From the sequence record NC_070952.1: a stretch of DNA of 64,000 nt; one strand, written 5' to 3'. The stretch's first letter is position 1, and the number at the start of each line of letters is the position of its first letter. This document shows positions 17,839 to 63,031 of this stretch, one piece after another. The notes under the pieces were generated by a model. It made no database searches, was not told the DNA's origin, and worked only from the letters and a program-made list of their open reading frames with translations. Both the position numbers and the translations under genes were made by a program.

Positions 17839-17876
17839 CATAATCTCCTACTTACCCTTGGGTAAGTAGGAGTATG
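17839..17876. terminator. YTAC-family hairpin with CATA/TATG flanks, convergent junction
   Basis: CATA-at-CTCCTACTTACCC-tt-GGGTAAGTAGGAG-TATG. Confidence 0.75.
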
Positions 17877-17878
17877 CT

Positions 17879-19642
17879 TTATGCGGCTTTCTTTAATTCT
17901 TCTTTTGCTTCTTTAAGGAAAGGAATAACTGACTCTTCGTAGAATGAATTAATGTCAGTTAACTGCGGCATACCGTAAATGGTGTTGCACAGAGTTACTG
18001 CATTTGCAATTGGACTTGATGCGTAGTTCACCCCTAAACGACGGAACTCAATACGATCTAATCCTTCTACTTCACAGACTTCAAGTTTGGTGGTCTTATT
18101 CGACACATTCAATGAAACAGTAATGTGGGGATAAGCACCGGTTACATCGATGTCATCCGTGTCCCCACGGCCACGTGAACGCCATGAAGGAAGTCCGGCA
18201 TATATTGGCTTGCCTTTATCTTCATTAAGCTCAGCGTGCAGCAGAGCGATCCAGTCACGCAGATCTGGTTTGATCTCTTTCCAGATATCTTCTTTCTTAC
18301 GCCCAACAGTTCCCCAGACATATCCGTGTTCCAAGGCAATAAAGGAAAGCTTATCGGAGATCATGGAGGGCTGTGATTGGTAAGACTTCAGTTCTGATGA
18401 AGTTACCAGGGAAGGCAGCGACAGAGAGTAGTCATTTGTTTTACGGTTTAGATCTTCGATAACCCAGTTATCTCGGATGTTATACATGACATATTCATAA
18501 GGGAAATTCTTCACCATGAATTTGTGCCACTCAACAGAACCGGATTGTAAATGGTCAGCCTCTGGAATATAGAGCTTACCTTCGACTTCTTCTGCAATAG
18601 CAGTGTTCTGCAGCGAGTAAGATTCTTTCTTACCCATCGGCGCACGTTTAATTGCATAGAACGACATTCCATCAAACCACTGCCATCTAGCGGGTGCCGT
18701 AACAACAGGGAAACGTTCTTGGCTCTCTAAGGGTGATCGTGAACCATCCACTTTGGTTTTGTACTCACGCCCTTTGAAGTAAGAGTAATCCATATACGCA
18801 TCAGGGATGCTTGGATCACTATACGTACGTGCCAGATCATAACCTTCGTTTAATAACGCTTCTTGATTACGCTCCATATCAAAGTTGGCATTCCAACTGA
18901 CAATGAAGTCCATGTTGCAATGGTGCCAGTATTGGATATTTGCATAAACCACTTGACCAGGTGTCTCAACGATATTCCAGTCGATCTTCTCAACATTATG
19001 AAGACGCATGTACTCGCCAAGATGTTTCGCTGCACATTCATTTAACTTGCGTAAAATGATTGCATCATCTTTTTGATCTTCAGCTGGGAAGTAAGAACGG
19101 ATTCCCGCCCAGAATGCATGACTGCCGTGAGTAGTGGATGCCATGTTAACTGGACCCACGCCACCGTCTTCTAAGATGTAGGTCTCCACGTCATAGGCTG
19201 CAACGCCATAAGCTTCTTGTGGTTGATAATCAGGATACTTCCGGTAATACTTTTCTTTATAGACAACCGGGACCGTTTCCTGGCAACCAAACACATATGG
19301 GTTGTTTTTTATATCGGCCATCTGAGCATTACGATCTGGACGACCAAAAAGGATTTTACTAATGTTTAATGCAAGACGGGATTCATTGGAAGAAAACTTA
19401 TCACATTTATTGGTTTCAATGTAATCGCGTTTATCTTTGAACCCTTGATGTTTCTTTTTAACGATATAGAAGTCACGTTTAAAGTTTTCAATTTTAGCCA
19501 GTTTATGTGTACGGCTACCATCTTCATGGACATTGGTGATCTTCGCAACCAAGAGATCATTATCCCGGTTGACTTTATTATGGGCAAGATATGCATGTTT
19601 GCATACCCTTCCAACAATAGGACTTTCATTTTTCTCAGTCAT
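17879..19642 (-). CDS. Split family B DNA polymerase, exonuclease plus motif A half (phiKZ gp82-like)
   Basis: ExoI AYDVET, ExoII SWNANFD, ExoIII YNIRD, motif A DIDVTGAYP; no motif B or C in this ORF. Confidence 0.85.
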   Translation of the reverse strand: MTEKNESPIVGRVCKHAYLAHNKVNRDNDLLVAKITNVHEDGSRTHKLAKIENFKRDFYIVKKKHQGFKDKRDYIETNKCDKFSSNESRLALNISKILFGRPDRNAQMADIKNNPYVFGCQETVPVVYKEKYYRKYPDYQPQEAYGVAAYDVETYILEDGGVGPVNMASTTHGSHAFWAGIRSYFPAEDQKDDAIILRKLNECAAKHLGEYMRLHNVEKIDWNIVETPGQVVYANIQYWHHCNMDFIVSWNANFDMERNQEALLNEGYDLARTYSDPSIPDAYMDYSYFKGREYKTKVDGSRSPLESQERFPVVTAPARWQWFDGMSFYAIKRAPMGKKESYSLQNTAIAEEVEGKLYIPEADHLQSGSVEWHKFMVKNFPYEYVMYNIRDNWVIEDLNRKTNDYSLSLPSLVTSSELKSYQSQPSMISDKLSFIALEHGYVWGTVGRKKEDIWKEIKPDLRDWIALLHAELNEDKGKPIYAGLPSWRSRGRGDTDDIDVTGAYPHITVSLNVSNKTTKLEVCEVEGLDRIEFRRLGVNYASSPIANAVTLCNTIYGMPQLTDINSFYEESVIPFLKEAKEELKKAA

Positions 19643-19653
19643 GCCGCACCCGA

Positions 19654-19663
19654 ATGTTATGAT
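19654..19663 (+). promoter_or_regulatory. Putative late promoter ATGTTATGAT
   Basis: Contains the phiKZ-type late core TATG; same 10-mer at 33920 and 37937, each ahead of a virion gene run. Confidence 0.55.
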
Positions 19664-19726
19664 GTCACAAGTTAAATTTTCTACATAATCTAACTTACCC
19701 TTTTTATTTACTCCGGAGTACTACCT

Positions 19727-21055
19727 ATGCTCGGTATTGAATTCCTGAACAGACCTAAAGAACTTCGGTTCGACGGACAAGAGTTCATGGATTACCAAAA
19801 AGGAGATCTGTTCAAAGATCTCGTAAAACTACTTGATAAAGCTCTTGTTCAGGAAGACAATCACTGGAAATTTAATAGAGAAAGTGAAGGCCCCGAAGAA
19901 CTTGAAACAGTCATCATGCACCATACCGGGATCCTAATGGAACTTAACCCTAATCCTACTGCTAATGCTGCAGTAGACGCTGGGTTTATCAATCCTGGTA
20001 ATCTGCTCAACATCAAAGGCGTTGAACAATTCTTTTCCGCTAAAGATTCCAGTATCGGTCAGACATTTAAACGACTGAAAACTGATGTCTTAAAAGGCTG
20101 GGTGGATACCTCAACTGGTAAAGTCGGCGGCGCATTCAGCAAAGTTCTGTTTAACTTGTATATGAGCAACTACATTGATGCGTTTATTCGCCACAAAGTG
20201 ATTGATCGATATAAAGTCACGATGGCTGAAGCATTAGCCGGAGTCATTATCCATGAATGTGGACATGTATTCACCGGTTTCCTTTATGTCTATCGTACCG
20301 TGATCGATCCGATCGTTTCTACCTCTGCAATCAAAATGATCGTTGAAGGTAAACTGTACGGTAAAGAACGTGTCCAGGTTGTTAAAGAAGCATTCAAAGC
20401 AATGGAAGTAGGTCAGAAAGTTGACGAAGAAGCGATTGCTGATTTCACCGGCGACGAATTCATCGTTTACTTTAACAAGGCTGTTGGTACCCGTGATACC
20501 CGCCGTACTTTGTCATTAGGAACGCAAGATCGTTCCTCTGAGATTTATGCTGACCTCTACGCAGTTCGTATGGGTTGCCCTAAATCTTTGATTGCTGCTT
20601 TGACTGCGTTACCCAACATGAGTGGAATCCTTGCAAGGATGTGGTTGTACAACATGTTTGGTATGGTAAGCATGATTTTATTGTGCAACCCAATACTGGC
20701 TGTTTTCTCTGGAATCGTTTCAACGTTCCTGATGCTCACTTTCTTTGCTTCATTCCTTTCGCCTAACAGTACTTACGACAGCCATTACCGTCGTTTGAAA
20801 ACAATTCTTCGTGATTACGTCGTTCAGCTGAACGGAACCAAAGATGTTGACCCTAAAGCTAAACTTCAGATGTTGAAAGATGCGAAAGAAATGGAAAAGA
20901 TTGTGGATGACGCGAAACCATTCCTGGAAGGGACGTGGGTTCAACGCACCATCAGCTATATCTTTAACGGCTCTGATTTCCGCGCACAAGAATTTGAACA
21001 CTACACCGACGAATTGGTTGGTCATACCCTATCACTTTATAAAGATGCAATTTAA
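19727..21055 (+). CDS. Putative virion protein with an M48-like zinc metalloprotease domain and a hydrophobic segment
   Basis: IIHECGH (20252-20266), SEIYADLYA, hydrophobic stretch MFGMVSMILLCNPILAVFSGIVSTFLMLTFFASFL, STYDSHYRRL; first gene of the head cluster. Confidence 0.7.
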   Translation: MLGIEFLNRPKELRFDGQEFMDYQKGDLFKDLVKLLDKALVQEDNHWKFNRESEGPEELETVIMHHTGILMELNPNPTANAAVDAGFINPGNLLNIKGVEQFFSAKDSSIGQTFKRLKTDVLKGWVDTSTGKVGGAFSKVLFNLYMSNYIDAFIRHKVIDRYKVTMAEALAGVIIHECGHVFTGFLYVYRTVIDPIVSTSAIKMIVEGKLYGKERVQVVKEAFKAMEVGQKVDEEAIADFTGDEFIVYFNKAVGTRDTRRTLSLGTQDRSSEIYADLYAVRMGCPKSLIAALTALPNMSGILARMWLYNMFGMVSMILLCNPILAVFSGIVSTFLMLTFFASFLSPNSTYDSHYRRLKTILRDYVVQLNGTKDVDPKAKLQMLKDAKEMEKIVDDAKPFLEGTWVQRTISYIFNGSDFRAQEFEHYTDELVGHTLSLYKDAI

Positions 21056-21064
21056 GGAATTGTC

Positions 21065-23750: not shown

Positions 23751-23793
23751 CATAATTCCTCTACCCCTCCGAAAGGAAGGGTAGAGGGTTATG
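23751..23793. terminator. YTAC-family hairpin with CATA/TATG flanks, convergent junction
   Basis: CATAatt-CCTCTACCCCTCC-gaaa-GGAAGGGTAGAGG-gtTATG. Confidence 0.75.
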
Positions 23794-27847: not shown

Positions 27848-28975
27848 ATGATTCCTCAAGCTCTTTCTTTAGGCGCTACGCTGCTTCAGGTAGCTACGGC
27901 CTTCGGTGCGAATAAGAAAGGTGTGGAAGTAGCTGGTAAAGTCATTGATGGCGCTGCGGCGACATACAATGTTCTCCAGACTGGTAACTTAGCCAAGTCT
28001 GCTTCTAAAACTTTGATCTCGCCTTTAGTTGCTATTGAAGACACCCTGATTCACCAAGATTACATGTCGGACCTGATGACCGTGGTTAACCTGCGTGACA
28101 TCAATGACGTTCTTTCTCACTTTGCTCAGCAAGGTAGTGTGAACGGCATTAAAGTATCTGATCTGGTTGATTCTATCCAACCTCGTCGTTCTGGGTTCCT
28201 GGCATTGCAAGGTGCTGAAGCATTCGGTAAATCTGAATCAGCCCTGAGAGCAATGCGTTTGAAAGAACTCAGTGGTATGGAAGCCCAGGCTCCAAACGGC
28301 AAACCGCTGCAGAACGTGGTTACCATTAACGGTAAGCAAGTTGCTGATCTGCAGGATTATAAACCCCTGGCTGTGGGTCGTACTGTTGACGCCTCTGTTA
28401 CCATCGATGGTACTCAGTTGACTTTCCCACTGACTTTCCGTCAGACTCCTGTCCCGGTTACTTCAGGTGATCTTCAAAAGATCTTCGAAGCAGCTCGTCC
28501 TCAGGATGGTTGGTTAGCTCGTATCATGATGGCGAAGACGGGTGAAATCACTTCCCCAGAACTGCTGACCGGTGAAGATGAGATCAAACGCGAGTTTAAC
28601 ATTCGTAAAAATGATCTGTCTGGTTATTACACCGAAGTGACTGATCGTGCAAGCAAGAATACCATGGCGGCTCTGCGCACCGGTATTGTCAGTGTGAACA
28701 CCCAGGCTAACACCATTATCATGACCTCAGAAACAGCACGCAACATCGAGCTGGAACTGGGTGTGCGTTTCGATGGTAGCGGTATCAACAAAATTCGTAA
28801 AGCGGTTATGGCCAACACGATTATTGTTGTCAATGACGCACTCGGTCTGTTTACCTTCTATTATGCAGGTAACAACATTCCGGAAGAATGGACCCAACGT
28901 CAGATCACCGTGAGCGCTAAGAAAGACACGTCAATGGATCTGGCTTCTCTGGCTAAACTGTTTGGTGGACGTTAA
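27848..28975 (+). CDS. Processed head protein (phiKZ gp89-like)
   Basis: QGAEAF and SGMEA motifs; GGAG SD supports ATG 27848; synteny. Confidence 0.7.
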   Translation: MIPQALSLGATLLQVATAFGANKKGVEVAGKVIDGAAATYNVLQTGNLAKSASKTLISPLVAIEDTLIHQDYMSDLMTVVNLRDINDVLSHFAQQGSVNGIKVSDLVDSIQPRRSGFLALQGAEAFGKSESALRAMRLKELSGMEAQAPNGKPLQNVVTINGKQVADLQDYKPLAVGRTVDASVTIDGTQLTFPLTFRQTPVPVTSGDLQKIFEAARPQDGWLARIMMAKTGEITSPELLTGEDEIKREFNIRKNDLSGYYTEVTDRASKNTMAALRTGIVSVNTQANTIIMTSETARNIELELGVRFDGSGINKIRKAVMANTIIVVNDALGLFTFYYAGNNIPEEWTQRQITVSAKKDTSMDLASLAKLFGGR

Positions 28976-33872: not shown

Positions 33873-33906
33873 AGGAACAAGGGGCTTCGGCTCCTTGTTC
33901 CTTTTT
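33873..33906 (+). terminator. Canonical rho-independent terminator
   Basis: AGGAACAAGGGGC-TTCG-GCTCCTTGTTCCT directly followed by TTTT. Confidence 0.9.
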
Positions 33907-37903: not shown

Positions 37904-37936
37904 CCTCTTACTCCTTAATCGGAGTAAGAGGGTATG
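37904..37936. terminator. YTAC-family hairpin followed by TATG
   Basis: CCTCTTACTCC-ttaatc-GGAGTAAGAGG-gTATG. Confidence 0.7.
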
Positions 37937-41488: not shown

Positions 41489-42837
41489 TTTCCAGTCAGA
41501 TTGAAACGGTATTACGTCAAGCCCAGTTAACTGCAACACTTTCTAATAAAGTTGCAGAAACAACTCAGATCACGTGTGTCTTTATTACGCCTGTAGGGCA
41601 GTATACCGCCCTCGGTGTGGAACGCATGATGGCGCAAGCTGACTTTGCCAGCGGCCGTAATGAGTTCATGCAGATTCGCGTAAGGCTCCAACCGGGTATC
41701 TACTTTGATCAGATCGTTAAATACCGTGATGACCTCACTTGCCAAGTGATTGTTCAATCGGGTACTGATCGAGTAATGCGCCAGTTTGTTGCCATTCCGT
41801 TAGTGGACAAGGATGTTCATACGGAATCCAATTCGACCATTGCTAACAAAATGGACGCACTCAATACCACTAACCTGGTTCCTTATGAATTCCAGTTAAT
41901 GGAGATTGGGTTTGCCCGTATTCGTAATGAACCGGTGTCAAACATCTATTCGATTGCCAATGTTCGTGATGTGATGATCTCGGTGTTTGAAGAAGGAACC
42001 CAGGCCATTGGGTTGACAGGTTATAACGCCTATAAAGGCCTGCAACTGTATGAACCGATTGACAACACCAATAACTTCCGCCAGATTATTTTTCCAAGCG
42101 GAACCCGTTTAATTGATGCAGCCCAGTATTTACAAAACCACAATGAGTACGGCGTGTACTCTAAAGGTTTGGGTTCTTTCTATAAACAAAACTATTGGTG
42201 GATCTATCCGCTCTTTAATACCGAGCGTGTGAAAACCCATCCTCGTCCAATTAACTTGATCCGTGTTCCTCAGAACAAAATTCCTGATTTGGACACCACC
42301 TTTTACATTACCCCAACGGCATTGACAATCATCGCATGTGGTACAGCTGATCATCAAGACCATGCTGACATTCGTAAACAGAATGAAGGTGTCGGGCATC
42401 GTAATGTCATGGGTGATGCTATTGCTGGTGATACAGGTTATCACTACAATAACGGCAGAGCGTTAACCACACGTGCTGACTCCATGCAGGAATACAAGTT
42501 AAGTAACCGGCGTGATGGGAATGAATGGATTCCGATTGACAGAAGCCCAACCGGTAACTTGATGGTGGGGATGACCCAGAATGCTCGCAACCAAGGTGAG
42601 ATACTTGAACTGGAGTGGCGTAATGGCGACACAGGCTATTTAGAACCTGGACACCCACTGACCTACCAGTACTTTTATGATGACGACACAGTGTACGTGA
42701 GACGCGGTGTGTTGCTGGGGTATCGCAGTGACTATATCCCAATCACTTCTGATGTTAAACCTATTCTGAAACGCACCACTAAGTTGATTATCTTCTTAAA
42801 AGCACAAGACCGCTATTCTGACGGCACGACAACATAA
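41485..42837 (+). CDS. Conserved virion structural protein (phiKZ gp101-like; possible baseplate hub)
   Basis: 450 aa, GTG start overlapping the previous TGA; function from synteny only. Confidence 0.6.
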   Translation: MISSQIETVLRQAQLTATLSNKVAETTQITCVFITPVGQYTALGVERMMAQADFASGRNEFMQIRVRLQPGIYFDQIVKYRDDLTCQVIVQSGTDRVMRQFVAIPLVDKDVHTESNSTIANKMDALNTTNLVPYEFQLMEIGFARIRNEPVSNIYSIANVRDVMISVFEEGTQAIGLTGYNAYKGLQLYEPIDNTNNFRQIIFPSGTRLIDAAQYLQNHNEYGVYSKGLGSFYKQNYWWIYPLFNTERVKTHPRPINLIRVPQNKIPDLDTTFYITPTALTIIACGTADHQDHADIRKQNEGVGHRNVMGDAIAGDTGYHYNNGRALTTRADSMQEYKLSNRRDGNEWIPIDRSPTGNLMVGMTQNARNQGEILELEWRNGDTGYLEPGHPLTYQYFYDDDTVYVRRGVLLGYRSDYIPITSDVKPILKRTTKLIIFLKAQDRYSDGTTT

Positions 42838-42876
42838 GACCTACCTCTACTCCTTCACGGAGTAGAGGTAGTTATG
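42833..42876. terminator. YTAC-family hairpin with CATA/TATG flanks, convergent junction
   Basis: CATAagac-CTACCTCTACTCC-ttcac-GGAGTAGAGGTAG-tTATG. Confidence 0.75.
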
Positions 42877-42883
42877 CAATTAA

Positions 42884-44428
42884 TTATGCATCCATATTGT
42901 CAAAGTCTGAGCCACCGCCCATTGCTTCACTTCTGTGTTGTAGTGATTTACGGAATGTCTTTCTTTCAAAGTTAATATCGTGAACCAAGCCATTTGTTTC
43001 GTGTAATGGGTAAATACCGAAACGGTCTGATTCTTTTGCACCTTCGCCACGTTTCTTACCGACGTAGTAGGTGAACCAACATTCATTGTTCTGCAGCTTC
43101 GCAACGTGCGCACCGATGACCACATCCACTTCGTTCGTCAGCTTGGTTGAACCTTCTGTCATTGACTTACCGCCAACATCACGGATAAAGTAAATTTCAG
43201 AATCATCATCTTGCTCACGGATAAACTTCTTGGCATCTGGGTTTAACTGGTGGGGAGTTAAGAACGCAGCACCACGAGAAGTAAAGAAGTTACGTGCACG
43301 GTTATACAAGTTCTGCAGCTTATCTGAACGCGACTCACCTGTGCATCCGGTTAAGTCAGCCATGGCCAGATAGTCATACGCTGCCACAATGATTTCATGC
43401 CCTTTTAATTCAAGGGTGCGAACACGTTGCATGATTTCATAAATGTTATCATGGCTTGGGTTAACACGGTAGAACTTAAATGCCCAACCATTCTCATGGA
43501 ATGCATCGATAATAACTCGCACCACATCTTCAGTAGTCGCTTCAAAGAAGTCTGGCTTTATTCCAGTCTTTGCAGTAACGAAGAGTTCATACATGCGCTT
43601 GAAGATAAGGCCCAGGGAGTCCTCTGCTGACATTAACAGTACAGTTGGTATCTTGGTCTTATTACGCAGTAACGGTCGGTTATACAGCGGAACAGAAGCC
43701 AGGATGTGACCCAGGAAGAATGACTTACCGCGGTTGGTCAGTGCTTCGATCATGTACATCAAGCCACGACGGATACCGCAGTCTGGGAATAACGCTTCAT
43801 TCAATCCAGCGAGCCCTGTCTTGATGATCCCTTCTGCCGATGATTCAATTTTTAACTGGTTAATAACTTCGATTAATGTTTCAGGATTATCCGAGCCGGT
43901 TTCTTCTACCACCGCTTTATCGAAGCTACTCTCATTTAAGTCGGTGATTTTACCACTAATGAGTTCATTGATTTTAATCCAGTCATCTTTGGTCAGGTCT
44001 TTTTCATCTTCAAAGAGGAAAGGACGAACCATCATTTTGAGCTGGGTGTTGAATTTACTTTTCGTGTCGTTATCACGCAGCTCTTTGGTAATCTGGAAAA
44101 TGAACTGTCGTGAATCTTCCACAGCCAGATCGTTGTTAAAAGAATCACCTAATACTTTTTCTAATTCTGGTGAAAGCATCACAATCTCAGCGATTTTCGG
44201 AGACAGTAGTGATGTTATGATATTAGAGTCTTCCGGTTGTTCCCGGATCCATGACAGTAACCGACGTAATCTTGCCTCGGTCTTCTTGTCCTGATGAACC
44301 ATACTCTCTTTACTGTTGGGTACTTCTTCAGCCAGCAACAGAATCTCGTCCATGAGATCAACGTCTTTTAAACGCCACGCTTGATAAATAGCGCTGGTGA
44401 GTTTAACAAGACGAATAAGGTTATTCAT
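42884..44428 (-). CDS. dnaB: DnaB-like replicative helicase (phiKZ gp118-like)
   Basis: Walker A ALTNRGKS, LMSAED, Walker B AAYDYL, TPHQLN, KRRGE-type arginine finger (GKKRGE); GAGGAG SD. Confidence 0.9.
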   Translation of the reverse strand: MNNLIRLVKLTSAIYQAWRLKDVDLMDEILLLAEEVPNSKESMVHQDKKTEARLRRLLSWIREQPEDSNIITSLLSPKIAEIVMLSPELEKVLGDSFNNDLAVEDSRQFIFQITKELRDNDTKSKFNTQLKMMVRPFLFEDEKDLTKDDWIKINELISGKITDLNESSFDKAVVEETGSDNPETLIEVINQLKIESSAEGIIKTGLAGLNEALFPDCGIRRGLMYMIEALTNRGKSFFLGHILASVPLYNRPLLRNKTKIPTVLLMSAEDSLGLIFKRMYELFVTAKTGIKPDFFEATTEDVVRVIIDAFHENGWAFKFYRVNPSHDNIYEIMQRVRTLELKGHEIIVAAYDYLAMADLTGCTGESRSDKLQNLYNRARNFFTSRGAAFLTPHQLNPDAKKFIREQDDDSEIYFIRDVGGKSMTEGSTKLTNEVDVVIGAHVAKLQNNECWFTYYVGKKRGEGAKESDRFGIYPLHETNGLVHDINFERKTFRKSLQHRSEAMGGGSDFDNMDA

Positions 44429-44466
44429 GTACAGCTCCTCATTGAAACTTTAAAGGGTTAATTCAT

Positions 44467-45018
44467 ATGTTGTTTAAATCGGGTGATAAGAACTTAGAGG
44501 TGTACTTCTTAAAAGAACATCACTTCCAACTTCTGAATTCTCATAAACTTGAACTGTCTCAGTTGCCTTACCTGCCTAAGTTCCCTGATGTCACTGATCA
44601 GGATGTTTTGGACTGGATTAGTTTCCAGCGCGCAGTGGAAAAGCAATACTGTGGATTTAAATCTACAACCTATGATTATGCCAGTGTTATTACAATCGGC
44701 GATATTAATCGTAAGGGAGTAGTTTATAAAGCAAAATATGATGAAGTATTAAATGCGGATTCCAGTATTGAATTAGGACCGTATTTCTACTATCATGTTT
44801 TCAATGGCAAGCTTTTCATTCTAAACAGTAATAATACTGTGAGCAATCCAATGTTCACAAACGTTCAAGGGGATCTGGCCAGTTCTCTTTATAAAACGTT
44901 ACTGTCGGCTTATAATGTTTTCGAATCGTACTTTCGTGATAATAAAGAACTCACGAAAACGGTTGCTCAAAGAAATTTCATTGATTTGGGTTTTGTAATT
45001 CAAAAAGCCGCTCAGTAA
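44467..45018 (+). CDS. Conserved protein preceding the major capsid gene (phiKZ gp119-like)
   Basis: 183 aa, divergent from dnaB; synteny. Confidence 0.7.
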   Translation: MLFKSGDKNLEVYFLKEHHFQLLNSHKLELSQLPYLPKFPDVTDQDVLDWISFQRAVEKQYCGFKSTTYDYASVITIGDINRKGVVYKAKYDEVLNADSSIELGPYFYYHVFNGKLFILNSNNTVSNPMFTNVQGDLASSLYKTLLSAYNVFESYFRDNKELTKTVAQRNFIDLGFVIQKAAQ

Positions 45019-45132
45019 TACTGTGTGGAATTGTGGGATGCGCGTATAGATACAGGCTATCTTATGCGTAAACATTGTAACCGCGAACAAATATATTTGT
45101 TTTCAAAAGCTTTTTCGTAAAGGGTATTAACG

Positions 45133-47289
45133 ATGGAACAAAATAAATTCCGTTTTTCCACTACTGGTAGTGGGAAAGATCTTAAAGTAATGATTGGCGC
45201 TATGCTGGCCGGTCACGCAGCAAACACTGATGGCTCGCTTCAATCCATCGTTGGTCAAGAAAATTTCCAGGGCGGCATCGCGAACCTCGCTAAATCAATG
45301 AACTACAACCAGGTGAACTCTGTTCAATCTCTGGCTGCAGCTGATGGCGACTTTAACACTCGTGCCGGCAACCTGAAAGACATGATCAAACACGGCGGTA
45401 TGGAATCTTTCTCCATGCAGTTGGAAGCTGGTGCTGTGGCTCGTATGAAAGCCGCTACCCTGGATCTGAACGCCCGTGGTAACAAACAGTGGGCTGCTGC
45501 TGAAGCACTGTATCCTACTCTGGTTCTGCCGTATACCGAAGAAGCGCTGGTTATTCCAATCGACATCGCTGGTGTTGGTGCGTACAACTCTTCTGGTAAC
45601 ATGAACGAAGCATGGGAAAACCTGCGTCCGATCGCATCAGTGCTGTCTGACTCCAAGTTCAACCCAGGCGATGACCTGAAGCTGTCTCCAGTTCTGCCAG
45701 AAAACTCTCAGGACGCAAACGCTGCTGCATTCGTGCCTTCAGCTGATTGGGCTCCGTGGGATGTGGCTTACGATGATGGTGATCTGCTGGGCCGTCAAGC
45801 TCACAAAACCAACTTCCTGGCTATCCGCAAAATCAACAACCTGTTGTCCCTGTGCCGTGCACCTGGCGCACCTGCTTTTGAGCAGAACGATGAGATCGAA
45901 GCATCTTCTATCAAACTGCAGCAGATCCTGCTGGACATCACTACCAAAGAAGGTACTGGTTTCTTCGTACTGGATACCGGCAGCATGTCTGGTGTCGCAG
46001 CTCGTCCATCGACTGGTGTTACCTCTGATGAAAAACGTCAGATTAACTTCGTCCTGAACGGCCTGAACGTCACCAACCTGAAAGATAAAGACGGTGCATC
46101 TACTACACTGTTCAAATCACTGACCGACGCCGGCATGAAAGTGTTCATTCAGTTCGAACTGACTGCAACTTACAGCCGTTCTACTCGTAGCTGGTCTCCA
46201 ACTGTTTCTCCAGTTGCGATCTCTTACATTGTTGATAAAGATGGTAACCGTCTGACCCCAGGTACTCCTGGTATGCCAGCTGATATCGCTGCACTGATCA
46301 CTACTGAAGCCTTCGAAGGTTCTGTAGCCGGTGTGCGTCTGAGCCTGAACCACGCTAACACCAACCGTAGCCGTTACGGTACTACTGTTGTTTATGCGAA
46401 CACTCAGAAATCTTACAACATCAACCGTCGTCAGCCGATCTCTGTTAAATATCCAATGCTGGATCAGGATAACAACGCGCAGGTTCTGGCGATGCTGGTT
46501 AAGCAGATGGACGTAATGGTTCAGCGTAACATGTCCCATGACGCATTCAAAGCAGCTAACGCTCACTTTGATTATGTCTACGACAACAATGGCATGAAAA
46601 TCGTTAACATCAACGATGACTCATCTGCCATTCTGCCTGGCCAGCACTTCCTGGGTACTGTAGGTATTGAATCTACTCTGAACCTGGTTGATGCAGTTTC
46701 CACTCTGGATTCCAAAGATACCCGCGAGAACATCGAAGCGGTTCTGGTGAATAAACTGTGGGATGTTATTACCGCTCTGCGTGTGAATGGCAACATCTCC
46801 GCACTGAAAGAACTGGATGACCGTGAAGAAGCCTACACCGTTGTAGCGCACGCCTCACTGGCTCCGTTCCTGATGACTCAGGGCGACTACCGTACCTTCG
46901 GTCAGAACATCAAGTTCAACATCGTTGAGACTAACATCGACTCAGAAGTCGGTCGTATGTGGGTTGTTCCTAAGTCCAACACCAAAGATGGCGAAGTTGA
47001 TATCTTCGGCGGCATCGGTATCTGTGTAGCTAAAGAGCTGCTGGTTATCGAAGGTTCTGTGCAGCAGTCTGATCGCCAGTACCGCATGATCATCACTCAG
47101 CCGGCTTACGATCACCACAGCCTGTGCCCAGTGATCGGTCGTGTTGTAGTTGAAGATATGGATAAACTGCTGGGTAACGAAGGCCTGATCACTCAGGTTA
47201 ACAAACACCTGATCGCAGGTGGTCCAGTCGTGACTATTCCACAGACTGATACCAGCGACGCGCAGGAAATCCCAGTAGACGTTCCATAA
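45133..47289 (+). CDS. Major capsid protein precursor (phiKZ gp120-like)
   Basis: 718 aa with extreme optimal-codon bias; between dnaB and nvRNAP beta; GGME|SF candidate cleavage at E91; own terminator. Confidence 0.9.
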   Translation: MEQNKFRFSTTGSGKDLKVMIGAMLAGHAANTDGSLQSIVGQENFQGGIANLAKSMNYNQVNSVQSLAAADGDFNTRAGNLKDMIKHGGMESFSMQLEAGAVARMKAATLDLNARGNKQWAAAEALYPTLVLPYTEEALVIPIDIAGVGAYNSSGNMNEAWENLRPIASVLSDSKFNPGDDLKLSPVLPENSQDANAAAFVPSADWAPWDVAYDDGDLLGRQAHKTNFLAIRKINNLLSLCRAPGAPAFEQNDEIEASSIKLQQILLDITTKEGTGFFVLDTGSMSGVAARPSTGVTSDEKRQINFVLNGLNVTNLKDKDGASTTLFKSLTDAGMKVFIQFELTATYSRSTRSWSPTVSPVAISYIVDKDGNRLTPGTPGMPADIAALITTEAFEGSVAGVRLSLNHANTNRSRYGTTVVYANTQKSYNINRRQPISVKYPMLDQDNNAQVLAMLVKQMDVMVQRNMSHDAFKAANAHFDYVYDNNGMKIVNINDDSSAILPGQHFLGTVGIESTLNLVDAVSTLDSKDTRENIEAVLVNKLWDVITALRVNGNISALKELDDREEAYTVVAHASLAPFLMTQGDYRTFGQNIKFNIVETNIDSEVGRMWVVPKSNTKDGEVDIFGGIGICVAKELLVIEGSVQQSDRQYRMIITQPAYDHHSLCPVIGRVVVEDMDKLLGNEGLITQVNKHLIAGGPVVTIPQTDTSDAQEIPVDVP

Positions 47290-47326
47290 TAGAACATCTT
47301 TCTGGTAAGTAAGAAATAAGCAGAAG

Positions 47327-47358
47327 CTCCCTTCCCTGGCTGAGGCTGGGGAAGGGGG
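47327..47358 (+). terminator. Terminator hairpin after the major capsid gene
   Basis: CTCCCTTCCC-tggc-tgag-gctg-GGGAAGGGGG then TCTTTGTT. Confidence 0.7.
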
Positions 47359-47400
47359 TCTTTGTTGTCTATTGGAAATTACAGTCTAAAACATTTTTAG

Positions 47401-47420
47401 GCAGATATTATCTAGTTGAG
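47401..47420 (+). promoter_or_regulatory. Putative promoter of the second nvRNAP operon
   Basis: GCAGATATTATCT identical to 711-723. Confidence 0.55.
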
Positions 47421-47466
47421 TAGTAGTACAAAAGTTATTTCTTGCAAGAAATATATTAGGAGCTAT

Positions 47467-48552
47467 ATGAGTACAGTATCTGGCGATAGCTGGTCACCGT
47501 CTCGGAAAGCAGCAATTGTTGAAGGTATCGAATATTTCAATTACACCAATCAGGATATTATTGTCACTGATCGGTTGGGAATTGAGATGGAGATCCTGCG
47601 GCAAGAAGGACGACCTGAACGATTAGAAGATCGGGGTAAGGTGATTGTCCGGGTTACTCGCTTGGTGGATCCAAGACGGGTTACTGTTTCCAATACGGAG
47701 TCCCAGTTAGAATGTGACCATCAGTTCTTGGTGGCATTCAATAAAAAGATCGAAGAGCTAAAAGGGAAAGTTACCCCGTATGCCTCAGAACTTGAGCAGA
47801 CCCGAATGACTGTTCAAATAGAGATGCACTTCGATTTCCTTAATTTCAAAACAACCCATAAATCTAACCTGCTCGGGATTACCATCCGCGAAACTACTAA
47901 CGTAGTGGATAAGTCACATGGTAGCAATCCGATTGGTTATATTAATGACCAGATTGTCAAAGATCTGGAAGAAGTAGACCACGAAGCCGACAACTATACA
48001 AACAAGGGAATTCGAACTCTCTTTTCTGCACGGTTGATCGACAATCAAAATAGATTGGGTATACTCTGGACCAGCGGTTTCGGGAGTCTAACCAAAATCA
48101 TACCAGTGATCGATGAGGAGCAACAAGACGGGCTATACTTAGCCGGTGGACTGAGACTACAACATAAACAATTTATCCCGATTGAAGAGTTGCTAGATCC
48201 TAAGAAACTATTAGGGTTTAATCTACACGCCACCGAAAGGGAGGCGAGAAAACACACCACAGGAGAATACACGATATCGGTTATGTCCGATAATGATAAA
48301 CTACGAAAAGAAACCAAAGAGCTTAAGGTCGAGCAAAAGAAACTCACTTCCAAAGTAGATGAACTCGAAATGAAAGCAAGGGTCGAAAAGCTCAATAGAG
48401 CACAAAGTGATTTTAAACAAACAGTGACAATAGAAAAATTGAAAGAATACCGAACGGATGATTATGTAAGTGGCTTAAACCGCTTTGTAACCAGTATAGT
48501 CGGTAATGCTAAAACTGTTCTTACTTTGCTACAGCTCTTGAAAATTATTTAG
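47467..48552 (+). CDS. Conserved hypothetical protein with a C-terminal coiled coil
   Basis: AGGAG SD supports ATG 47467; precedes nvRNAP beta N-half. Confidence 0.75.
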   Translation: MSTVSGDSWSPSRKAAIVEGIEYFNYTNQDIIVTDRLGIEMEILRQEGRPERLEDRGKVIVRVTRLVDPRRVTVSNTESQLECDHQFLVAFNKKIEELKGKVTPYASELEQTRMTVQIEMHFDFLNFKTTHKSNLLGITIRETTNVVDKSHGSNPIGYINDQIVKDLEEVDHEADNYTNKGIRTLFSARLIDNQNRLGILWTSGFGSLTKIIPVIDEEQQDGLYLAGGLRLQHKQFIPIEELLDPKKLLGFNLHATEREARKHTTGEYTISVMSDNDKLRKETKELKVEQKKLTSKVDELEMKARVEKLNRAQSDFKQTVTIEKLKEYRTDDYVSGLNRFVTSIVGNAKTVLTLLQLLKII

Positions 48553-48567: not shown

Positions 48568-50259
48568 ATGGATCCGCAAGTACTCAAACCCCTCCGGGAA
48601 CAAAGAGGAAGTTTTACTCAGGAGTTAGTGGATAGCTGGCACAAAAAGGACATGGACCGAATCATTCCCCATTTAGAGGAAGCGTTCCGCAACATGTTCA
48701 AGTCGCTGCAAGAGAAAGGCTATATTTTCGACGGCATCGAAGAAATGGATCCGATTGAGTTCTATAATCAGATTACACGTTCTAGTAGTAGCGGAACGAA
48801 AGACTTCGAGATTGCGAAAAACAGTTTCTTTGGTGTCAGGATTTTGAATCACTTTAAAGATCCCGTAACCGGTGTAGAATCTGAACTGAAGAGCCCATTG
48901 ATGTTCCTGGCTTATACCAACAAGCACGGTGACATCTTAACGCGAAACAGTACCTATAACTTGCAGTATGTGCTTTCTGAGCGCGGCCCTTCTGTAGACG
49001 GTGGTCGTGATAAAACCATCTTCATCCGTGTACTCGGCTATAAATTTAAAGTCACAAAAGAGATTCACACGTTTAACCGAGTTTATCGTAACAACGGTAA
49101 TATCAATACCAGTGCAGTGAACATGACGTTACCTGCAAACCGTTTCATGAACTCCAAGAATGATCGCAAGATCACCAGTAAGAAAGTTCCTATTCCATTA
49201 CTGGCGTGGTATGTCTTTGGCAAATATGGTTTTGGCCATTGCATGAAAGAATTTGCTGAATGTGACTATGTGATTGATACACTCGATACGCTGCTGGATA
49301 TCTGTCCAGAATCGGAAGGGTGGCAAGTCATGAGTAACACCGGTGCGATTCACCCGAAAGCATTTGATCGTCCAAAAGGCACGCCACTCTTAGCAGAACC
49401 GGCGTTGGCGATTAAGAGCCGTAATAAAGGTGGAGAAATCAGTAACCTGGCATTACAGTACGCCGGCGGCTTATTGTTTATGTTCGGTGTCTTCAGTCAT
49501 GAACTCGACGTGCGTCGTTTAAACGATGTCGATTATTGGCGACTGATTATTGGACGTTGTTCGATACGACTTCCACAACGCACTGATCCGAGTGTCTATC
49601 TGCGTCAGATGAATGAACATTTCACCAGTATTGAGGAAATGGCAGATAACATCACGGTTGAGAAGTATAACAAGTTTGACATCAACATCAGTTCGACGTA
49701 TGACCTGTTTAACTATTTGATGCTGAACTATTCTTCTCTGATCAAGTTGTATGATCCGGCAGACATGTTGCACAAAGAACTGGCCTCTATGGAATTCTTG
49801 GTGGACTTCCTGATTCATCAGGCCAATGACTTCCGTTTCATGATCCGTAATAAAAGTAACATCACCCCGAAAATTATCAATCGTGAATTGGATACCCATT
49901 TCCGTTTGTTCAACATTGATAAATCGGTACGTGAAAATAATACCATCCTCGAGCAAACCGGTACTGATAATCCACTTATCGACTTTGGTCTGGGTATCAT
50001 TCTTCAAACTAAATCCACCGTTAACCGCGGACCTGGTAGAAAGAAAGAAGATTTTGATGCCAACCATCCTGGCAGCGTGATTCATCCATCGCAACCATTC
50101 GTAGTGTCTTATCAGTATGCAAGTAAACCGAATCCGGATGGCCGCGGAATGCTCCAACCTCGAGTTTATTTAGTACAAGGTAAGTACACTGCGTTGCGTG
50201 CGGAAGATCGAGCACTGTACGAGGCAACAAAACGCAGGCTTAAATTTAGAGAGAGTTAA
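48568..50259 (+). CDS. Non-virion RNA polymerase beta subunit, N-terminal half (phiKZ gp123-like)
   Basis: LMFLAYTNKHG...RNSTYNLQYVLSERG resembles beta P-x-MT-x-x-G-x-F-x-I-x-G-x-E-R; position after the capsid gene. Confidence 0.8.
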   Translation: MDPQVLKPLREQRGSFTQELVDSWHKKDMDRIIPHLEEAFRNMFKSLQEKGYIFDGIEEMDPIEFYNQITRSSSSGTKDFEIAKNSFFGVRILNHFKDPVTGVESELKSPLMFLAYTNKHGDILTRNSTYNLQYVLSERGPSVDGGRDKTIFIRVLGYKFKVTKEIHTFNRVYRNNGNINTSAVNMTLPANRFMNSKNDRKITSKKVPIPLLAWYVFGKYGFGHCMKEFAECDYVIDTLDTLLDICPESEGWQVMSNTGAIHPKAFDRPKGTPLLAEPALAIKSRNKGGEISNLALQYAGGLLFMFGVFSHELDVRRLNDVDYWRLIIGRCSIRLPQRTDPSVYLRQMNEHFTSIEEMADNITVEKYNKFDINISSTYDLFNYLMLNYSSLIKLYDPADMLHKELASMEFLVDFLIHQANDFRFMIRNKSNITPKIINRELDTHFRLFNIDKSVRENNTILEQTGTDNPLIDFGLGIILQTKSTVNRGPGRKKEDFDANHPGSVIHPSQPFVVSYQYASKPNPDGRGMLQPRVYLVQGKYTALRAEDRALYEATKRRLKFRES

Positions 50260-52670: not shown

Positions 52671-52698
52671 GAGAACCTACCTTAACGGGTAGGTTCTC
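52671..52698. terminator. YTAC-family hairpin
   Basis: GAGAACCTACC-ttaacg-GGTAGGTTCTC then TTTGCTT. Confidence 0.7.
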
Positions 52699-54222: not shown

Positions 54223-54241
54223 CATATATAATTATAGTGTA
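54223..54241 (+). promoter_or_regulatory. Putative phage early promoter motif
   Basis: CATATATAATTATAGTGTA. Confidence 0.6.
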
Positions 54242-54301
54242 TAAACAATAAGTATTAATCTCTAATGCTTAAACTCATCCTAAACTTAGTAAGGAAATAC
54301 C

Positions 54302-54853: not shown

Positions 54854-54881
54854 CCCTACTCTCCCAATTGGGAGAGTAGGG
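54854..54881. terminator. Perfect 28-bp palindrome (YTAC family), convergent junction
   Basis: CCCTACTCTCCCAA|TTGGGAGAGTAGGG; long T-run about 11-24 nt downstream. Confidence 0.8.
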
Positions 54882-54906
54882 TTTCACTGTGTTTATTTTT
54901 TTTTTA

Positions 54907-59947: not shown

Positions 59948-60173
59948 GAAGAATTTGACATTCATTACGAAGCACAGTCTCAAGACGTCTATAGAAGATA
60001 TTCGACCTTCGGATGTTGTGAGACTTGTTCGTTCTTTTATCGGTGTCGAACTCTATTCCACTGACATTGAATCGATTAGACTGGTCCCCGGAGGATACCT
60101 TATTCGTATCCGTCCGGACAGTCCGATTTATTGCGGTAAGTTTAAAATTAAATATCGTAAGTATATTAATTAA
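59916..60173 (+). CDS. Small probable virion protein (start uncertain: ATG 59916 or TTG 59955)
   Basis: RSFIGVELYSTDI...YLIRIRPDSPIYCGKFKI module like 35020. Confidence 0.55.
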   Translation: MAKWRTPSLTKKNLTFITKHSLKTSIEDIRPSDVVRLVRSFIGVELYSTDIESIRLVPGGYLIRIRPDSPIYCGKFKIKYRKYIN

Positions 60174-60179
60174 GGAAAT

Positions 60180-61115
60180 ATGATGGCTGATTCATCTACA
60201 GGCCGCGATAGTCAGAAGCTCCCTAACCAGTTAGTGTCTGCCACTGGTATGGGTCTGATTATTAACGCTGCTTTGTCTTGCAACCAAACTGTTAATATTC
60301 CAAAGAACACCACGCTGAATGAGAAGTTTAGCATTCTGGCTGATGAATCAGTGGGTCGTAAAAACGGCCGTGATTTCCAACTGGGTTACTTTGGTGTAGG
60401 TATCGGTGGTTCCCGTTCTATCGGTCAAGACAGTTATGGTTTAGAAGGCCGTCAAGTCTATCAGCATAAAGCCGTAGACTTTGCGCCGTTCTATGGTATC
60501 CCAATGGTTGCCCGTAAACTGGGTAGTGACCTGGATCCAACTGTTCGTGATAATTACCGTATTCGTGAAGTGCGCAAAATCGGCGACGATATCTACATCC
60601 TTTACTGGTTGAAGAAAGCGGGCTTTACTGAATTTGATCCAACCATGAAAGTGGGTGAGCGTGATCCATCCACCGGTAATGAAACAGAACGTGAATACGT
60701 TCCAAAAGAAGCTGATCTGAGCCCAACGCCATATCAGTTAACGTCAACCAACAACGTTCCAATTACCGACACCTATATTAACGGTACCGGTAAAATCGAT
60801 CTGTCTCTGGACAGTAACGACCTGGAAGAACTGCGTAATGTTTGCCGTATCTTGTTTAACGATGAAGGTAAGGCAGCAATCAACGAAGTTTACATGTGTT
60901 ATGGAATTGAAACGACCAATAGCGGTCAGGTTGATTCTGGCGCGTCTGTAAACTACAAAGAGCTGGTTTCTTGTGTAGTGAGTTATCAGATCACTGAAGC
61001 GTATGCACGCGATGCTAACGCCAACAACAAGATGCCGTGGTTCTTCTGGTACGGTAACTCGATTCCGCTTCTGGTTGGTGCAGATGCTTTAGCAGCTGCT
61101 AATACCGGTAGCTAA
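60180..61115 (+). CDS. Conserved virion/baseplate protein
   Basis: 311 aa, AAGGA SD; LGYFGVGIGG motif; synteny. Confidence 0.7.
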   Translation: MMADSSTGRDSQKLPNQLVSATGMGLIINAALSCNQTVNIPKNTTLNEKFSILADESVGRKNGRDFQLGYFGVGIGGSRSIGQDSYGLEGRQVYQHKAVDFAPFYGIPMVARKLGSDLDPTVRDNYRIREVRKIGDDIYILYWLKKAGFTEFDPTMKVGERDPSTGNETEREYVPKEADLSPTPYQLTSTNNVPITDTYINGTGKIDLSLDSNDLEELRNVCRILFNDEGKAAINEVYMCYGIETTNSGQVDSGASVNYKELVSCVVSYQITEAYARDANANNKMPWFFWYGNSIPLLVGADALAAANTGS

Positions 61116-61132
61116 TAAGGAAGGGACTTATT

Positions 61133-61756
61133 ATGGCCGATGTTGATAAGTCCCAACCTGAATCCCCTTTGGATATTACTCTGAGCAAATGGTCAACCGT
61201 CAAGGCTATTATCAGTACGATAAATGATAAATACGGGTTGACGCTCGATCTGAATAAGTACGAAGATCGTTTAGCATATGTGAACAGTGATGGTGTATTG
61301 GCACTCGATATTGTCGATACCAACTCAGGGGAATTAGCTTGGGCCGTGATAGATTCACAAAGCGGTAAAGTGGGCTCGTCGATCAATGAAGTGATTGATC
61401 ACCCGAAAGCATTTGGTTTCAGTAATGTTATCCAGAACTTTGGGGTAGTAGTAAACAGCGAGAAGGAACTTGAGTTCTTAAAGGACGTGCGCTTAGACGT
61501 GCGTTATGACTCAGGAATGACTGGCGGCGACAAGTCATTTAAATTGATGACATTGTTGAACAATTATACTGTTGGGGACGGGTTTACCTCGAATCCAAGT
61601 CAAGGATGCACAACGGCGTATTTCGTGCTCAGATACTTCGGTAAGGGTAGCGAGGCGCCGGGCGTTTATAACTTCAATCCTGAGGCTAAATGTTTAGTCG
61701 TGGTGGAGTTAATGATGTATGGAGAGTATCAACTCCATGCACTTGTTGTGAGATAA
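61133..61756 (+). CDS. Probable virion protein
   Basis: IISTINDKYGLTL motif typical of phiKZ-like tail-associated modules. Confidence 0.65.
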   Translation: MADVDKSQPESPLDITLSKWSTVKAIISTINDKYGLTLDLNKYEDRLAYVNSDGVLALDIVDTNSGELAWAVIDSQSGKVGSSINEVIDHPKAFGFSNVIQNFGVVVNSEKELEFLKDVRLDVRYDSGMTGGDKSFKLMTLLNNYTVGDGFTSNPSQGCTTAYFVLRYFGKGSEAPGVYNFNPEAKCLVVVELMMYGEYQLHALVVR

Positions 61757-61760
61757 AATT

Positions 61761-62336
61761 ATGAGCGTTAAAATCTTAGGGATAGATCCGGCAACTGGCC
61801 AGCTTGGTGCGGCCGCTTTGGAATTGGATTGTTACGAACGTAAGAAGTTCAAACTGATTTATGCAGACACATTAAACGGTGAGCATAATGAGTTTGGGGT
61901 TCGTGCTGACAATCCATCCCAAACCCGTGCTAAAGGACTGACACGCGCTTACGGTCATGTGTTTGATATGATCGATCCCGTAGTAGTGGGATGCGAGGAT
62001 AACTTCTTAGGGCCTAACCCAGCCAGTTTCAAACGTCTGATCGAAGTGGTGTCTTATTTAAACATCTATACGGTGACTAATAAAGCAGACACCCCTTTTA
62101 AATTAGTGCTTCCCCGTTTAGCTAAACGAATTGTTAAGGCTGATTTTACAGGGGCGACTAAAGATGACGTACGAGAAGGGTTGAAGAAATGTCCTTTCCT
62201 GGATCTGAATGGGTTTGATTTAGATACTCTTACCTGGGATGCAAATGACGGAATCCTCATTGCGTTGTATATTGCAGTGCAATATTACAAAGATTTAGGT
62301 TGGGACGTGTTCGATGGCACCTGCCTTAAAAGTTAG
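61761..62336 (+). CDS. ruvC: RuvC-like Holliday junction resolvase
   Basis: ILGIDPATGQLG (D), VGCEDNF (E), ATKDDVREG, DANDGILIA (D..D). Confidence 0.85.
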   Translation: MSVKILGIDPATGQLGAAALELDCYERKKFKLIYADTLNGEHNEFGVRADNPSQTRAKGLTRAYGHVFDMIDPVVVGCEDNFLGPNPASFKRLIEVVSYLNIYTVTNKADTPFKLVLPRLAKRIVKADFTGATKDDVREGLKKCPFLDLNGFDLDTLTWDANDGILIALYIAVQYYKDLGWDVFDGTCLKS

Positions 62337-62988
62337 AACCAAATACGAAGTTAAACCTTGGGATCGTATACCGGTTGTACTCCGGGCGCTCTCTGGGTTT
62401 AACTCGTGCTTAACAGTGTCCGTAATGAGTGTCGTCTTTATCTGGTCTGTGCATTTAAGTGTAACGACCGGTAAAGCCACATGGCCTGAGTTCATGACCG
62501 GTTTGTTAATGATCATCGGACCTATCATTATTACGATCAACTTTGTTAATGCAAAATCTATTATTTCAACTATCGTGGGTGTGACCGATGAAGTAGAAGG
62601 ACGACCAATAGGTGACAGTACGGTAATACCGACTCAACCCTCTGTTATGGTGGCGTCTGCTACGGGAATTGTTTCACAACACGACATTGCCTTTGAGCGT
62701 GAAATCGTTGGACCAACAACAGTTCTACTAAGGGCCATTGCTGGTACAGTCTCCACGCATGTTATTTGTTTTTGCAGTTTGTTGTTTACCTGGACCATTC
62801 ACGATTCAATGATTGCTGGTAATTCCCTTCCTGGCGATGCCCAGTTGTTTATGGTGGTGATTGGACCGATTATAACATCTTGGAATTTTGTTCGTGCTAA
62901 CGCGACATTAAACGCGGTTATCAAAGGAACCAGTGCAATTAACGTATGGCGAGACCGACTTGCAAACATGTTATCAACACAGAAATAA
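62314..62988 (+). CDS. Membrane protein with two repeated TM hairpins; holin candidate
   Basis: About 4 hydrophobic segments; internal repeat ending IGPII...NFV; adjacent to spanin genes; start uncertain. Confidence 0.6.
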   Translation: MAPALKVRTKYEVKPWDRIPVVLRALSGFNSCLTVSVMSVVFIWSVHLSVTTGKATWPEFMTGLLMIIGPIIITINFVNAKSIISTIVGVTDEVEGRPIGDSTVIPTQPSVMVASATGIVSQHDIAFEREIVGPTTVLLRAIAGTVSTHVICFCSLLFTWTIHDSMIAGNSLPGDAQLFMVVIGPIITSWNFVRANATLNAVIKGTSAINVWRDRLANMLSTQK

Positions 62989-62989
62989 A

Positions 62990-63031
62990 CATACTACTCT
63001 ACCTCCCACAACGGGAGGTAGAGTATATATG
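62990..63031. terminator. YTAC-family hairpin with CATA/TATG flanks, convergent junction
   Basis: CATAc-TACTCTACCTCCC-acaac-GGGAGGTAGAGTA-taTATG, then a T-run. Confidence 0.75.

Follow-up and report, generated by a model that had tools for sequence, protein, structure and literature searches.

Hairpins flanked by CATA and TATG in Erwinia phage AH04 as probable intrinsic terminators of the phiKZ type

Introduction

When the RNA 3' ends of phage phiKZ were mapped by Oxford Nanopore Technologies (ONT)-cappable-seq, 61 predicted intrinsic terminators were found to share the motif BCCYCCCCHWWDGGGRRGGBYTTATKYYGT, which describes a pyrimidine-first stem-loop with a 5'-TTAT-3' region after it, and six regions between convergent genes proved to be two-way terminators (Putzeys et al. 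2024, Microlife, PMC10914365). A strongly similar motif (motif A) was described in 59 terminators of phage 201phi2-1 (PMC11512511). Here, we analyze a related element of Erwinia phage AH04 (NC_070952.1, 262,639 bp, genus Meadowvirus), in which a hairpin is preceded by CATA and followed by TATG. The analysis started from a stretch of 64,000 nucleotides, called the window below, which is 100% identical to AH04 record positions 62001-126000. Coordinates are window positions unless marked as record positions, and the whole AH04 genome was used beyond the window for statistical power.

The tetranucleotide TATG is also known from transcription initiation. It is the necessary core of phiKZ late promoters, with its G at +1 and no conservation after it (Yakunina 2015, PMC4666361), and gp123 binds it beneath its beta-lobe in single-stranded form on the non-template strand (IUCrJ 2026, PMC12809450). 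A sequence-only reading of the window had started from this late-promoter core, which is correct, and from the use of pre-melted templates in vitro, which is not, since such templates were needed for the structures and not for in vitro transcription. It had proposed either that hairpin extrusion opens TATG promoters, giving antisense RNAs at convergent junctions, or that TATG, as a promoter-like pause, completes termination. For comparison, promoter hairpins of the N4 type have 5-7 bp stems and 3-nt loops, lie ahead of +1 where transcription units begin, and serve a single-subunit RNA polymerase (RNAP). Our results partly support the interpretation given by the sequence-only reading, on the termination side. 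The AH04 elements are probably intrinsic terminators of a type conserved in phiKZ-like nucleus-forming jumbo phages, a reading to which we assign a probability of roughly 0.85 on the strength of sequence comparisons.

Results

Two-way elements at convergent gene ends

The AH04 record annotates a PhuZ tubulin, a nuclear shell protein, phiKZ-like internal head proteins and several split RNAP beta/beta' genes, which together identify AH04 as a phiKZ-like, nucleus-forming jumbo phage. Genes 78, 79, 92 and 126 match phiKZ RNAP regions, and the split beta/beta' genes indicate that the phage has its own virion and non-virion multisubunit RNAPs. Regulatory features are not annotated in the record, and the genome announcement (PMC8567782) is reportedly a short note.

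The window contains seven junctions of convergent genes, with a hairpin at each. The arrangement CATA-hairpin-TATG is exact at the four positions named by the sequence-only reading, which are the best four of these seven junctions. At the others, the hairpin at 10941 has the word on one flank, and those at 283 and 54854 have no adjacent TATG. The four elements with the word on both flanks are as follows.

17839..17876, both strands: predicted two-way terminator between gene 99 (+) and DNA polymerase gene 100 (-); CATA 17839-42, 12-bp hairpin 17845-72 with loop CTTG, TATG 17873-76
23751..23793, both strands: predicted two-way terminator between gene 104 (+) and gene 105 (-); CATA 23751-54, hairpin 23758-87 with a 13-position stem (12 pairs, 1 mismatch) and loop GAAA, TATG 23790-93
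42833..42876, both strands: predicted two-way terminator between gene 121 (+) and DnaB-like helicase gene 122 (-); CATA 42833-36, overlapping the gene 121 stop codon, hairpin 42839-73, TATG 42873-76
62990..63031, both strands: predicted two-way terminator between gene 137 (+) and gene 138 (-); CATA 62990-93, 13-bp hairpin 62995-63025, TATG 63028-31, then a plus-strand T-run

Position, form and conservation of the hairpins

A scan of the whole AH04 genome for intergenic hairpins with at least 10 pairs and an arm GC content of at least 0.4 revealed 60 GC-rich hairpins. These were present at 18 of 18 convergent junctions, at no divergent junction, and at 39 of ~226 co-directional junctions on the plus strand. 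The median distance from the upstream stop codon to the stem is 9 nt (interquartile range 6-14), whereas that from the stem to the next start codon is 36 nt (interquartile range 20-84). This location at gene 3' ends, together with the two-way placement at convergent pairs, is that of phiKZ-type terminators.

The elements have stems of 11-15 bp and loops of 4-6 nt, and they share with phiKZ-type terminators a stem-loop with a pyrimidine-rich 5' arm and a purine-rich 3' arm. The 5' arm is at least 75% pyrimidine in all seven convergent-junction hairpins of the window, and the pyrimidine-first class accounts for 26 of the 60 hairpins genome-wide. Many of the hairpins carry a CTAC core in the 5' arm, and the 3' arm thus reads GTAG. 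Since the pyrimidine-first character survives reverse complementation, RNA from either strand folds into the same kind of hairpin.

The junction between gene 121 and the DnaB-like gene was compared in AH04, Kc263, Yubaba, SXP01, OBP, N1M2, pEt-SU, Survivor and LAh10. A strong hairpin is present in all nine of these phages of different genera with differing sequences, and compensatory changes on both sides were found in 9 of 14 pairs. Placement, form and conservation of the hairpins are hallmarks of transcript-end structures, not of promoters.

The TATG word on the arriving strand

For each strand, the sequence after the stem was taken as a tail, and a tail counted as arriving when a gene on its strand runs up to the hairpin, and as non-arriving otherwise. 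TATG was scored when it started in a 10-position window from -3 to +6 relative to the stem. It was found in 31 of 77 arriving tails and in 3 of 43 non-arriving tails (Fisher p = 1e-4). The frequency in arriving tails is far from that of the AT-rich intergenic background (4.3%; binomial p = 1.6e-22), and TATG is the most enriched 4-mer among them (32 tails observed, 3.0 expected, p = 4e-25). The association of TATG with hairpins was also borne out by composition-preserving shuffles of each tail, which gave a mean of 7.7 TATG tails (sd 2.6, maximum 18 in 20,000 shuffles) compared to the 31 observed.

The word was present in 20 of 34 tails at convergent junctions. At co-directional junctions, TATG was found downstream in 9 of 39 cases, whereas the mirror-image CATA occurred upstream in 2 of 39. 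TATG therefore tracks the direction of the arriving strand, and the symmetric CATA...TATG arrangement is a one-sided tail written on both strands.

The first T of TATG lies mostly at +2 or +3 from the stem. Alignment of the tails on TATG gave the consensus (T)TATG-TTTGTTT, with the position matrix TATG-T-T-T-(G/T)-T-T-T preceded by T. TTATK occurs within 20 nt of the stem in 44 of 77 arriving tails. With its modal offset of +2/+3, TATG has the placement of TTAT(G/T) expected of the phiKZ type, 1-3 nt past the stem. The letter after TAT was G rather than T in a ratio of 30:9 in AH04, 27:12 in OBP, 25:14 in phiKZ and 26:6 in Survivor, in tails containing about 50% T and 15-17% G. This preference for G at the fourth letter is not predicted by U-richness alone, which leaves room for sequence-specific reading. 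An uninterrupted U-tract directly after the stem, as in canonical intrinsic terminators, was not found in the tails of the AH04 elements. These tails start with (N)TATG or TTTG, and runs of 6-10 T begin 9-18 nt downstream of the stem.

Relatives and the T4 control

Related phages were run through the same pipeline without annotation. TATG was present in 27 of 64 arriving tails in OBP, 25 of 49 in phiKZ, 26 of 45 in Survivor and 28 of 60 in Kc263 (rank 1 of 256). LAh10 showed a weaker signal, with TATG in 18 of 76 arriving tails (rank 6) and TTAT at rank 1. Phage T4, which depends on the host polymerase, was used as a control. The strict thresholds returned four hairpins in T4, and the thresholds were then relaxed for both T4 and AH04. 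Under the relaxed thresholds, TATG showed no enrichment in T4 (1 of 24 tails, rank 81), where the top words were CTTT and TTTT, whereas in AH04 it was found in 21 of 64 arriving tails (rank 1) and in 0 of 30 non-arriving tails.

CATAA gene ends

The sequence-only reading had listed seven genes ending in NCA-TAA, a sequence that reads TTATG on the opposite strand. All seven do end in this way, and there is an eighth, on the minus strand at 12292.

CATAA gene ends in the window: 10299, 12292 (-), 17879 (-), 23799 (-), 42837, 42884 (-), 47289, 54847

In the whole genome 23 genes end in CATAA, compared to 11.3 expected from codon usage (p = 0.001). Such ends are about three times commoner in genes with a hairpin within 40 nt after them (12 of 73) than in those without (11 of 219; Fisher p = 0.004). 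Some represent conserved coding, as the DnaB-like gene ends in GCA TAA (Ala-stop) in AH04, OBP, pEt-SU and Survivor. When the tails were read against the annotated stops, the hairpin-proximal TATG was the stop codon of the opposing gene in only ~3 of 19 convergent tails, and a stop-codon origin of the word was rejected on this basis.

Inside genes, antisense TATG appeared as the second to fourth most avoided 4-mer by a Markov model, but under synonymous-codon shuffling the apparent deficit narrowed to a modest observed/expected ratio of 0.79-0.93 (rank 30-80). Sense TATG in genes gave ratios of 0.81-0.89 (rank 10-16) under the same shuffling.

Other hairpins of the window

Further hairpins of the window, including those at the three other convergent junctions, are listed below.

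283..310, both strands: hairpin between convergent gene 76 (+) and gene 77 (-); pyrimidine-first class, no adjacent TATG on either side, plus-strand T-run 13 nt downstream
5637..5666, plus strand: pyrimidine-first hairpin after gene 82; tail TTTGTTTGG
10305..10336, plus strand: predicted one-way terminator hairpin after gene 90, which ends in GCA TAA; tail TTATTTCC, without TATG
10941..10974, both strands: hairpin between convergent gene 91 (+) and gene 92 (-); stem 10941-68, TTATG 10970-74 on the plus side (TATG 10971-74), other flank without CATA
16568..16597, plus strand: predicted one-way terminator hairpin after gene 97; the gene 98 start codon (16598) abuts the stem, TATG at +9, then T10
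33873..33902, plus strand: purine-first hairpin (other class) after internal head protein gene 112; canonical T-rich tail
37904..37936, plus strand: predicted one-way terminator after gene 117; 11-bp hairpin 37904-31, TATG 37933-36, no upstream CATA
47327..47358, plus strand: pyrimidine-first hairpin (loop of 12 nt) downstream of the major head protein gene, whose end is CCA TAA; tail TCTTTGTTGTC
52671..52698, plus strand: 11-bp hairpin after gene 127; tail TTTGCTTCTG
54854..54881, both strands: hairpin between convergent gene 130 (+) and gene 131 (-); plus-strand tail TTTCACTGTGTTTA, then T10, and TTATG at +7 on the minus side

The minus-side TTATG at the 54854 hairpin is the stop codon of gene 130 (GCA TAA). 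Three of these stems had been given by the sequence-only reading as followed by TATG, which is true of the hairpins spanning 10941-68 and 37904-31. For the third, at 16568-97, gene 98 starts with the ATG beside the stem, and TATG is found at +9. This start codon directly adjoins the 3' arm of the hairpin (GGATAAGGTAGG-ATG, 16568-16600), so the ribosome-binding region of gene 98 would lie within the stem of the preceding terminator.

Identical copies of a terminator hairpin were observed outside the window at record positions 193652-193681 and 226847-226876, where the flanks match too (AACAAACATAT ... GCTATGACTTATTT), and further identical pairs are located at 28699/36202 and 8722/198865. These copies suggest copying or strong convergence among AH04 terminators.

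Distal T-run and promoter-like motif

A run of 6-10 T, usually after TTA, was observed 9-18 nt (mostly 13-16 nt) past terminator hairpins, including window positions 16612-16621, 54896-54905, 63041-63046 and others. On the plus strand of AH04, 13 of 15 runs of at least seven T fall within 30 nt after a terminator hairpin. The run is nearly confined to the majority gene strand, convergent junctions included (68 of 254 tails, compared to 1 of 118 on the minority strand, in six phages), with the following counts of tails for the majority and the minority strand.

AH04: 19/55 vs 1/23
OBP: 11/47 vs 0/17
phiKZ: 5/32 vs 0/17
Survivor: 6/32 vs 0/13
Kc263 (strand flipped in the record): 17/43 vs 0/17
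LAh10: 10/45 vs 0/31

A published description of a hairpin-spaced T-run was not found in the literature. The T-run is unlikely to represent the T-rich upstream element of early promoters, because its spacing is fixed by the hairpin, no conserved sequence follows it, and in two cases (hairpins at record positions 49993 and 250981) a start codon comes directly after it.

A promoter-like motif, approximately cAGA(T)ATATTAT-N5-GTGTATAA(A/C), has eight clean intergenic copies, all on the plus strand. One lies in the window at 54227-54255, upstream of gene 130, and the others at record positions 8781, 11851, 57570, 153981, 198928, 202064 and 247430. The copies are located ~25-60 nt before gene starts, often downstream of a terminator hairpin. 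A resemblance of the AACAAACATA flank to the AR9-type promoter AACA-N6-TW was considered and dropped, as such a promoter would point into the hairpin.

AH04 relatives in public runs

A 14-kb contig of an AH04 relative from public runs showed 56 differences across 5.6 kb (region 42000-47600; ~99% identical), and two further public runs contain relatives at ~95% identity. Plant, food and bat-gut metagenomes were listed by the run search as containing AH04 relatives. A search of public runs for RNA evidence of AH04 yielded only DNA-like assemblies of its relatives, and the contigs from four of these runs carry no transcript ends.

Discussion

Intrinsic termination at the AH04 hairpins

The termination reading draws on the position, orientation, statistics and conservation of the elements and on their match to the mapped phiKZ motif, all of which were observed directly. 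TATG as a part of the termination signal, one of the two options of the sequence-only reading, fits these results, as the element matches a motif defined at mapped RNA 3' ends. In the proposed mechanism, transcripts would end where a GC-rich stem of 11-15 bp, pyrimidine-rich in its 5' arm, gives way after 1-3 nt to (T)TATG and a T/G-rich tail. A pyrimidine-first hairpin is the same on both strands, and a single one could stop polymerases coming from either side if the tail word is present on both. Because the word would be needed on both strands, convergent junctions would have CATA to the left of the hairpin and TATG to its right. We infer that RNA 3' ends form at these hairpins in AH04 and that TATG is read sequence-specifically, as more than U-rich filler.

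Several observations weigh against this reading. About 60% of the AH04 hairpin tails have no TATG, which makes the word a preference rather than a requirement. Its enrichment is higher at convergent than at co-directional junctions, which a plain terminator model does not predict. The AH04 tail TTATG-TTTGT is one pyrimidine longer than its phiKZ counterpart: the published 9-mer TTATKYYGT occurs exactly in 1 of 77 tails, and the version with one extra pyrimidine in 5 of 77. Finally, CAUA pairs with UAUG in free-RNA folds, so a part of the signal could be stem extension.

Promoter, pairing and by-product explanations

Could the hairpin-adjacent TATGs instead be late promoters of the non-virion RNAP (nvRNAP), acting in terminator-promoter cassettes where neighboring genes are co-directional and as antisense promoters where they converge, perhaps aided by N4-like hairpin or cruciform extrusion? 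The word is the necessary phiKZ late core bound single-stranded by gp123, AH04 encodes an orthologue of this subunit (listed below as context, outside the elements), and some co-directional copies of TATG precede a gene by 7-134 nt.

48568..50259, plus strand: gene 126, annotated only as 'polymerase'; syntenic orthologue of phiKZ gp123, the beta-like subunit of nvRNAP

However, TATG is commonest at convergent junctions (20/34 vs 9/39), where it is not upstream of a late gene that it might drive and only the 3' end of the opposing gene lies downstream. Divergent junctions, where promoters must be, have no such hairpins, and TATG keeps its register with the hairpin and stop codons rather than with start codons. 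A T/G-rich consensus follows TATG, unlike in phiKZ late promoters, which lack downstream conservation. The model late promoter P119L, at phiKZ 117,600 in the divergent DnaB/gp119 spacer, has no upstream hairpin and is transcribed from linear polymerase chain reaction (PCR) fragments, and only four antisense RNAs with a defined start are recorded in phiKZ. The AH04 hairpins also differ from N4-type promoter hairpins in stem length, loop and gene-3' location. The promoter explanation is thus improbable, and the extrusion half of the sequence-only reading, with its antisense RNAs, is opposed by the same observations, namely stop-codon-anchored hairpins at every convergent and no divergent junction, a TATG that follows arriving transcription, the conserved tail, P119L and the scarcity of phiKZ antisense starts. 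Some co-directional copies of TATG might conceivably also serve as start sites.

It is somewhat less improbable, although still unlikely, that CATA and TATG matter only through mutual pairing, as a weak A-U-rich extension of the stem base like that of A-tract/U-tract terminators, with the word itself not being read. In minimum-free-energy folds of the four two-way sites, CAUA and UAUG are paired on both strands over a bulge of 0-3 nt, and the phiKZ palindrome usually extends into ATAA...TTAT, at co-directional junctions too (14/33 non-arriving tails). Any complementary words would serve such pairing, yet TATG is the single most enriched 4-mer. It also occurs without its partner in AH04 (9/39 vs 2/39 at co-directional junctions) and in Kc263 (28/60 vs 2/30), and the fourth-position G is favored over T by ~3:1 in tails with 50% T and 17% G, with the same bias in AH04, OBP, phiKZ and Survivor. 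The least credible explanation, to which we give almost no weight, is that the pattern is a by-product of stop-codon context (NCA-TAA ends) or of AT-rich intergenic composition. CATAA ends are about twice as frequent as expected, and some are conserved coding. Against this stand the small share of proximal TATGs that are opposing stop codons at convergent junctions, the composition-preserving shuffles and the lack of TATG enrichment in T4.

A possible code for two polymerases

Within the termination reading, the tail might be a code for two polymerases, with TATG addressed to nvRNAP and the distal oligo-T to the virion RNAP, a tentative idea that we consider doubtful on the present sequence comparisons. 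A beta-lobe pocket of the gp123 type (gene 126) would read non-template TATG during elongation, and nvRNAP would pause once it had moved a few nucleotides beyond the hairpin, making the promoter core double as a termination element on both strands. The distal oligo-T would serve the virion RNAP, whose early transcription has been reported mainly on the majority gene strand. Sequence-specific reading of TATG is supported by the ~3:1 preference for G over T in AH04, OBP, phiKZ and Survivor and by the tight +2/+3 register. Conversely, the published phiKZ motif allows G or T, 60% of the tails do without TATG, and the G at +5/+6 is nearer to the stem than classical termination points.

Implications

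For AH04, with no regulatory features annotated in its published record, the elements offer a working map of probable transcription-unit ends. The phiKZ terminator signal reaches a distant clade of nucleus-forming phages, with OBP, Survivor, Kc263 and LAh10 as the scanned relatives. The results also raise the question of why a stop signal contains the four letters that the phage polymerase uses to start. If that polymerase does read TATG during elongation, this would represent a sequence-specific pause-and-terminate mechanism of the core enzyme in a non-canonical RNAP.

Comparison with known systems

The late promoters of phiKZ share with the AH04 elements the identical four letters, and the subunit that reads them has an AH04 orthologue in gene 126. 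However, late promoters lie upstream of late genes and need no hairpin, as in P119L, whereas the AH04 elements follow stop codons in a fixed hairpin register. As in the N4 virion-RNAP promoters, a DNA hairpin stands beside a word resembling a start site, but the AH04 hairpins have stems of 11-15 bp and loops of 4-6 nt, are located at gene 3' ends in a phage with multisubunit beta/beta'-like polymerases, and show no sign of initiation. The classical bacterial two-way terminator (A-tract, hairpin, U-tract) is similar in that one hairpin with complementary flanks serves both convergent genes. It differs in its uninterrupted U-tract, in place of which the AH04 stem is followed by UAUG and a G-interrupted U-rich sequence.

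The closest match is the phiKZ terminator. Both have a GC-rich stem-loop whose 5' arm is rich in pyrimidines and whose 3' arm is rich in purines, with TTAT(G/T) 1-3 nt past the stem. The pyrimidine-rich stretch ending in GT that comes next in phiKZ has a variant, mostly inexact counterpart in AH04. Both are found at gene ends, in two-way form at convergent pairs, in a phage group with its own multisubunit RNAPs. The stem core is CTAC/GTAG in AH04 and CCYCCCC in phiKZ, and the flank word follows arriving transcription in AH04, whereas the phiKZ palindrome usually extends to both sides. The phiKZ terminator was defined at mapped RNA 3' ends, and the AH04 element by its sequence. Compared in this way, the AH04 element is probably a slightly variant member of an already known terminator family, not a new kind of promoter.

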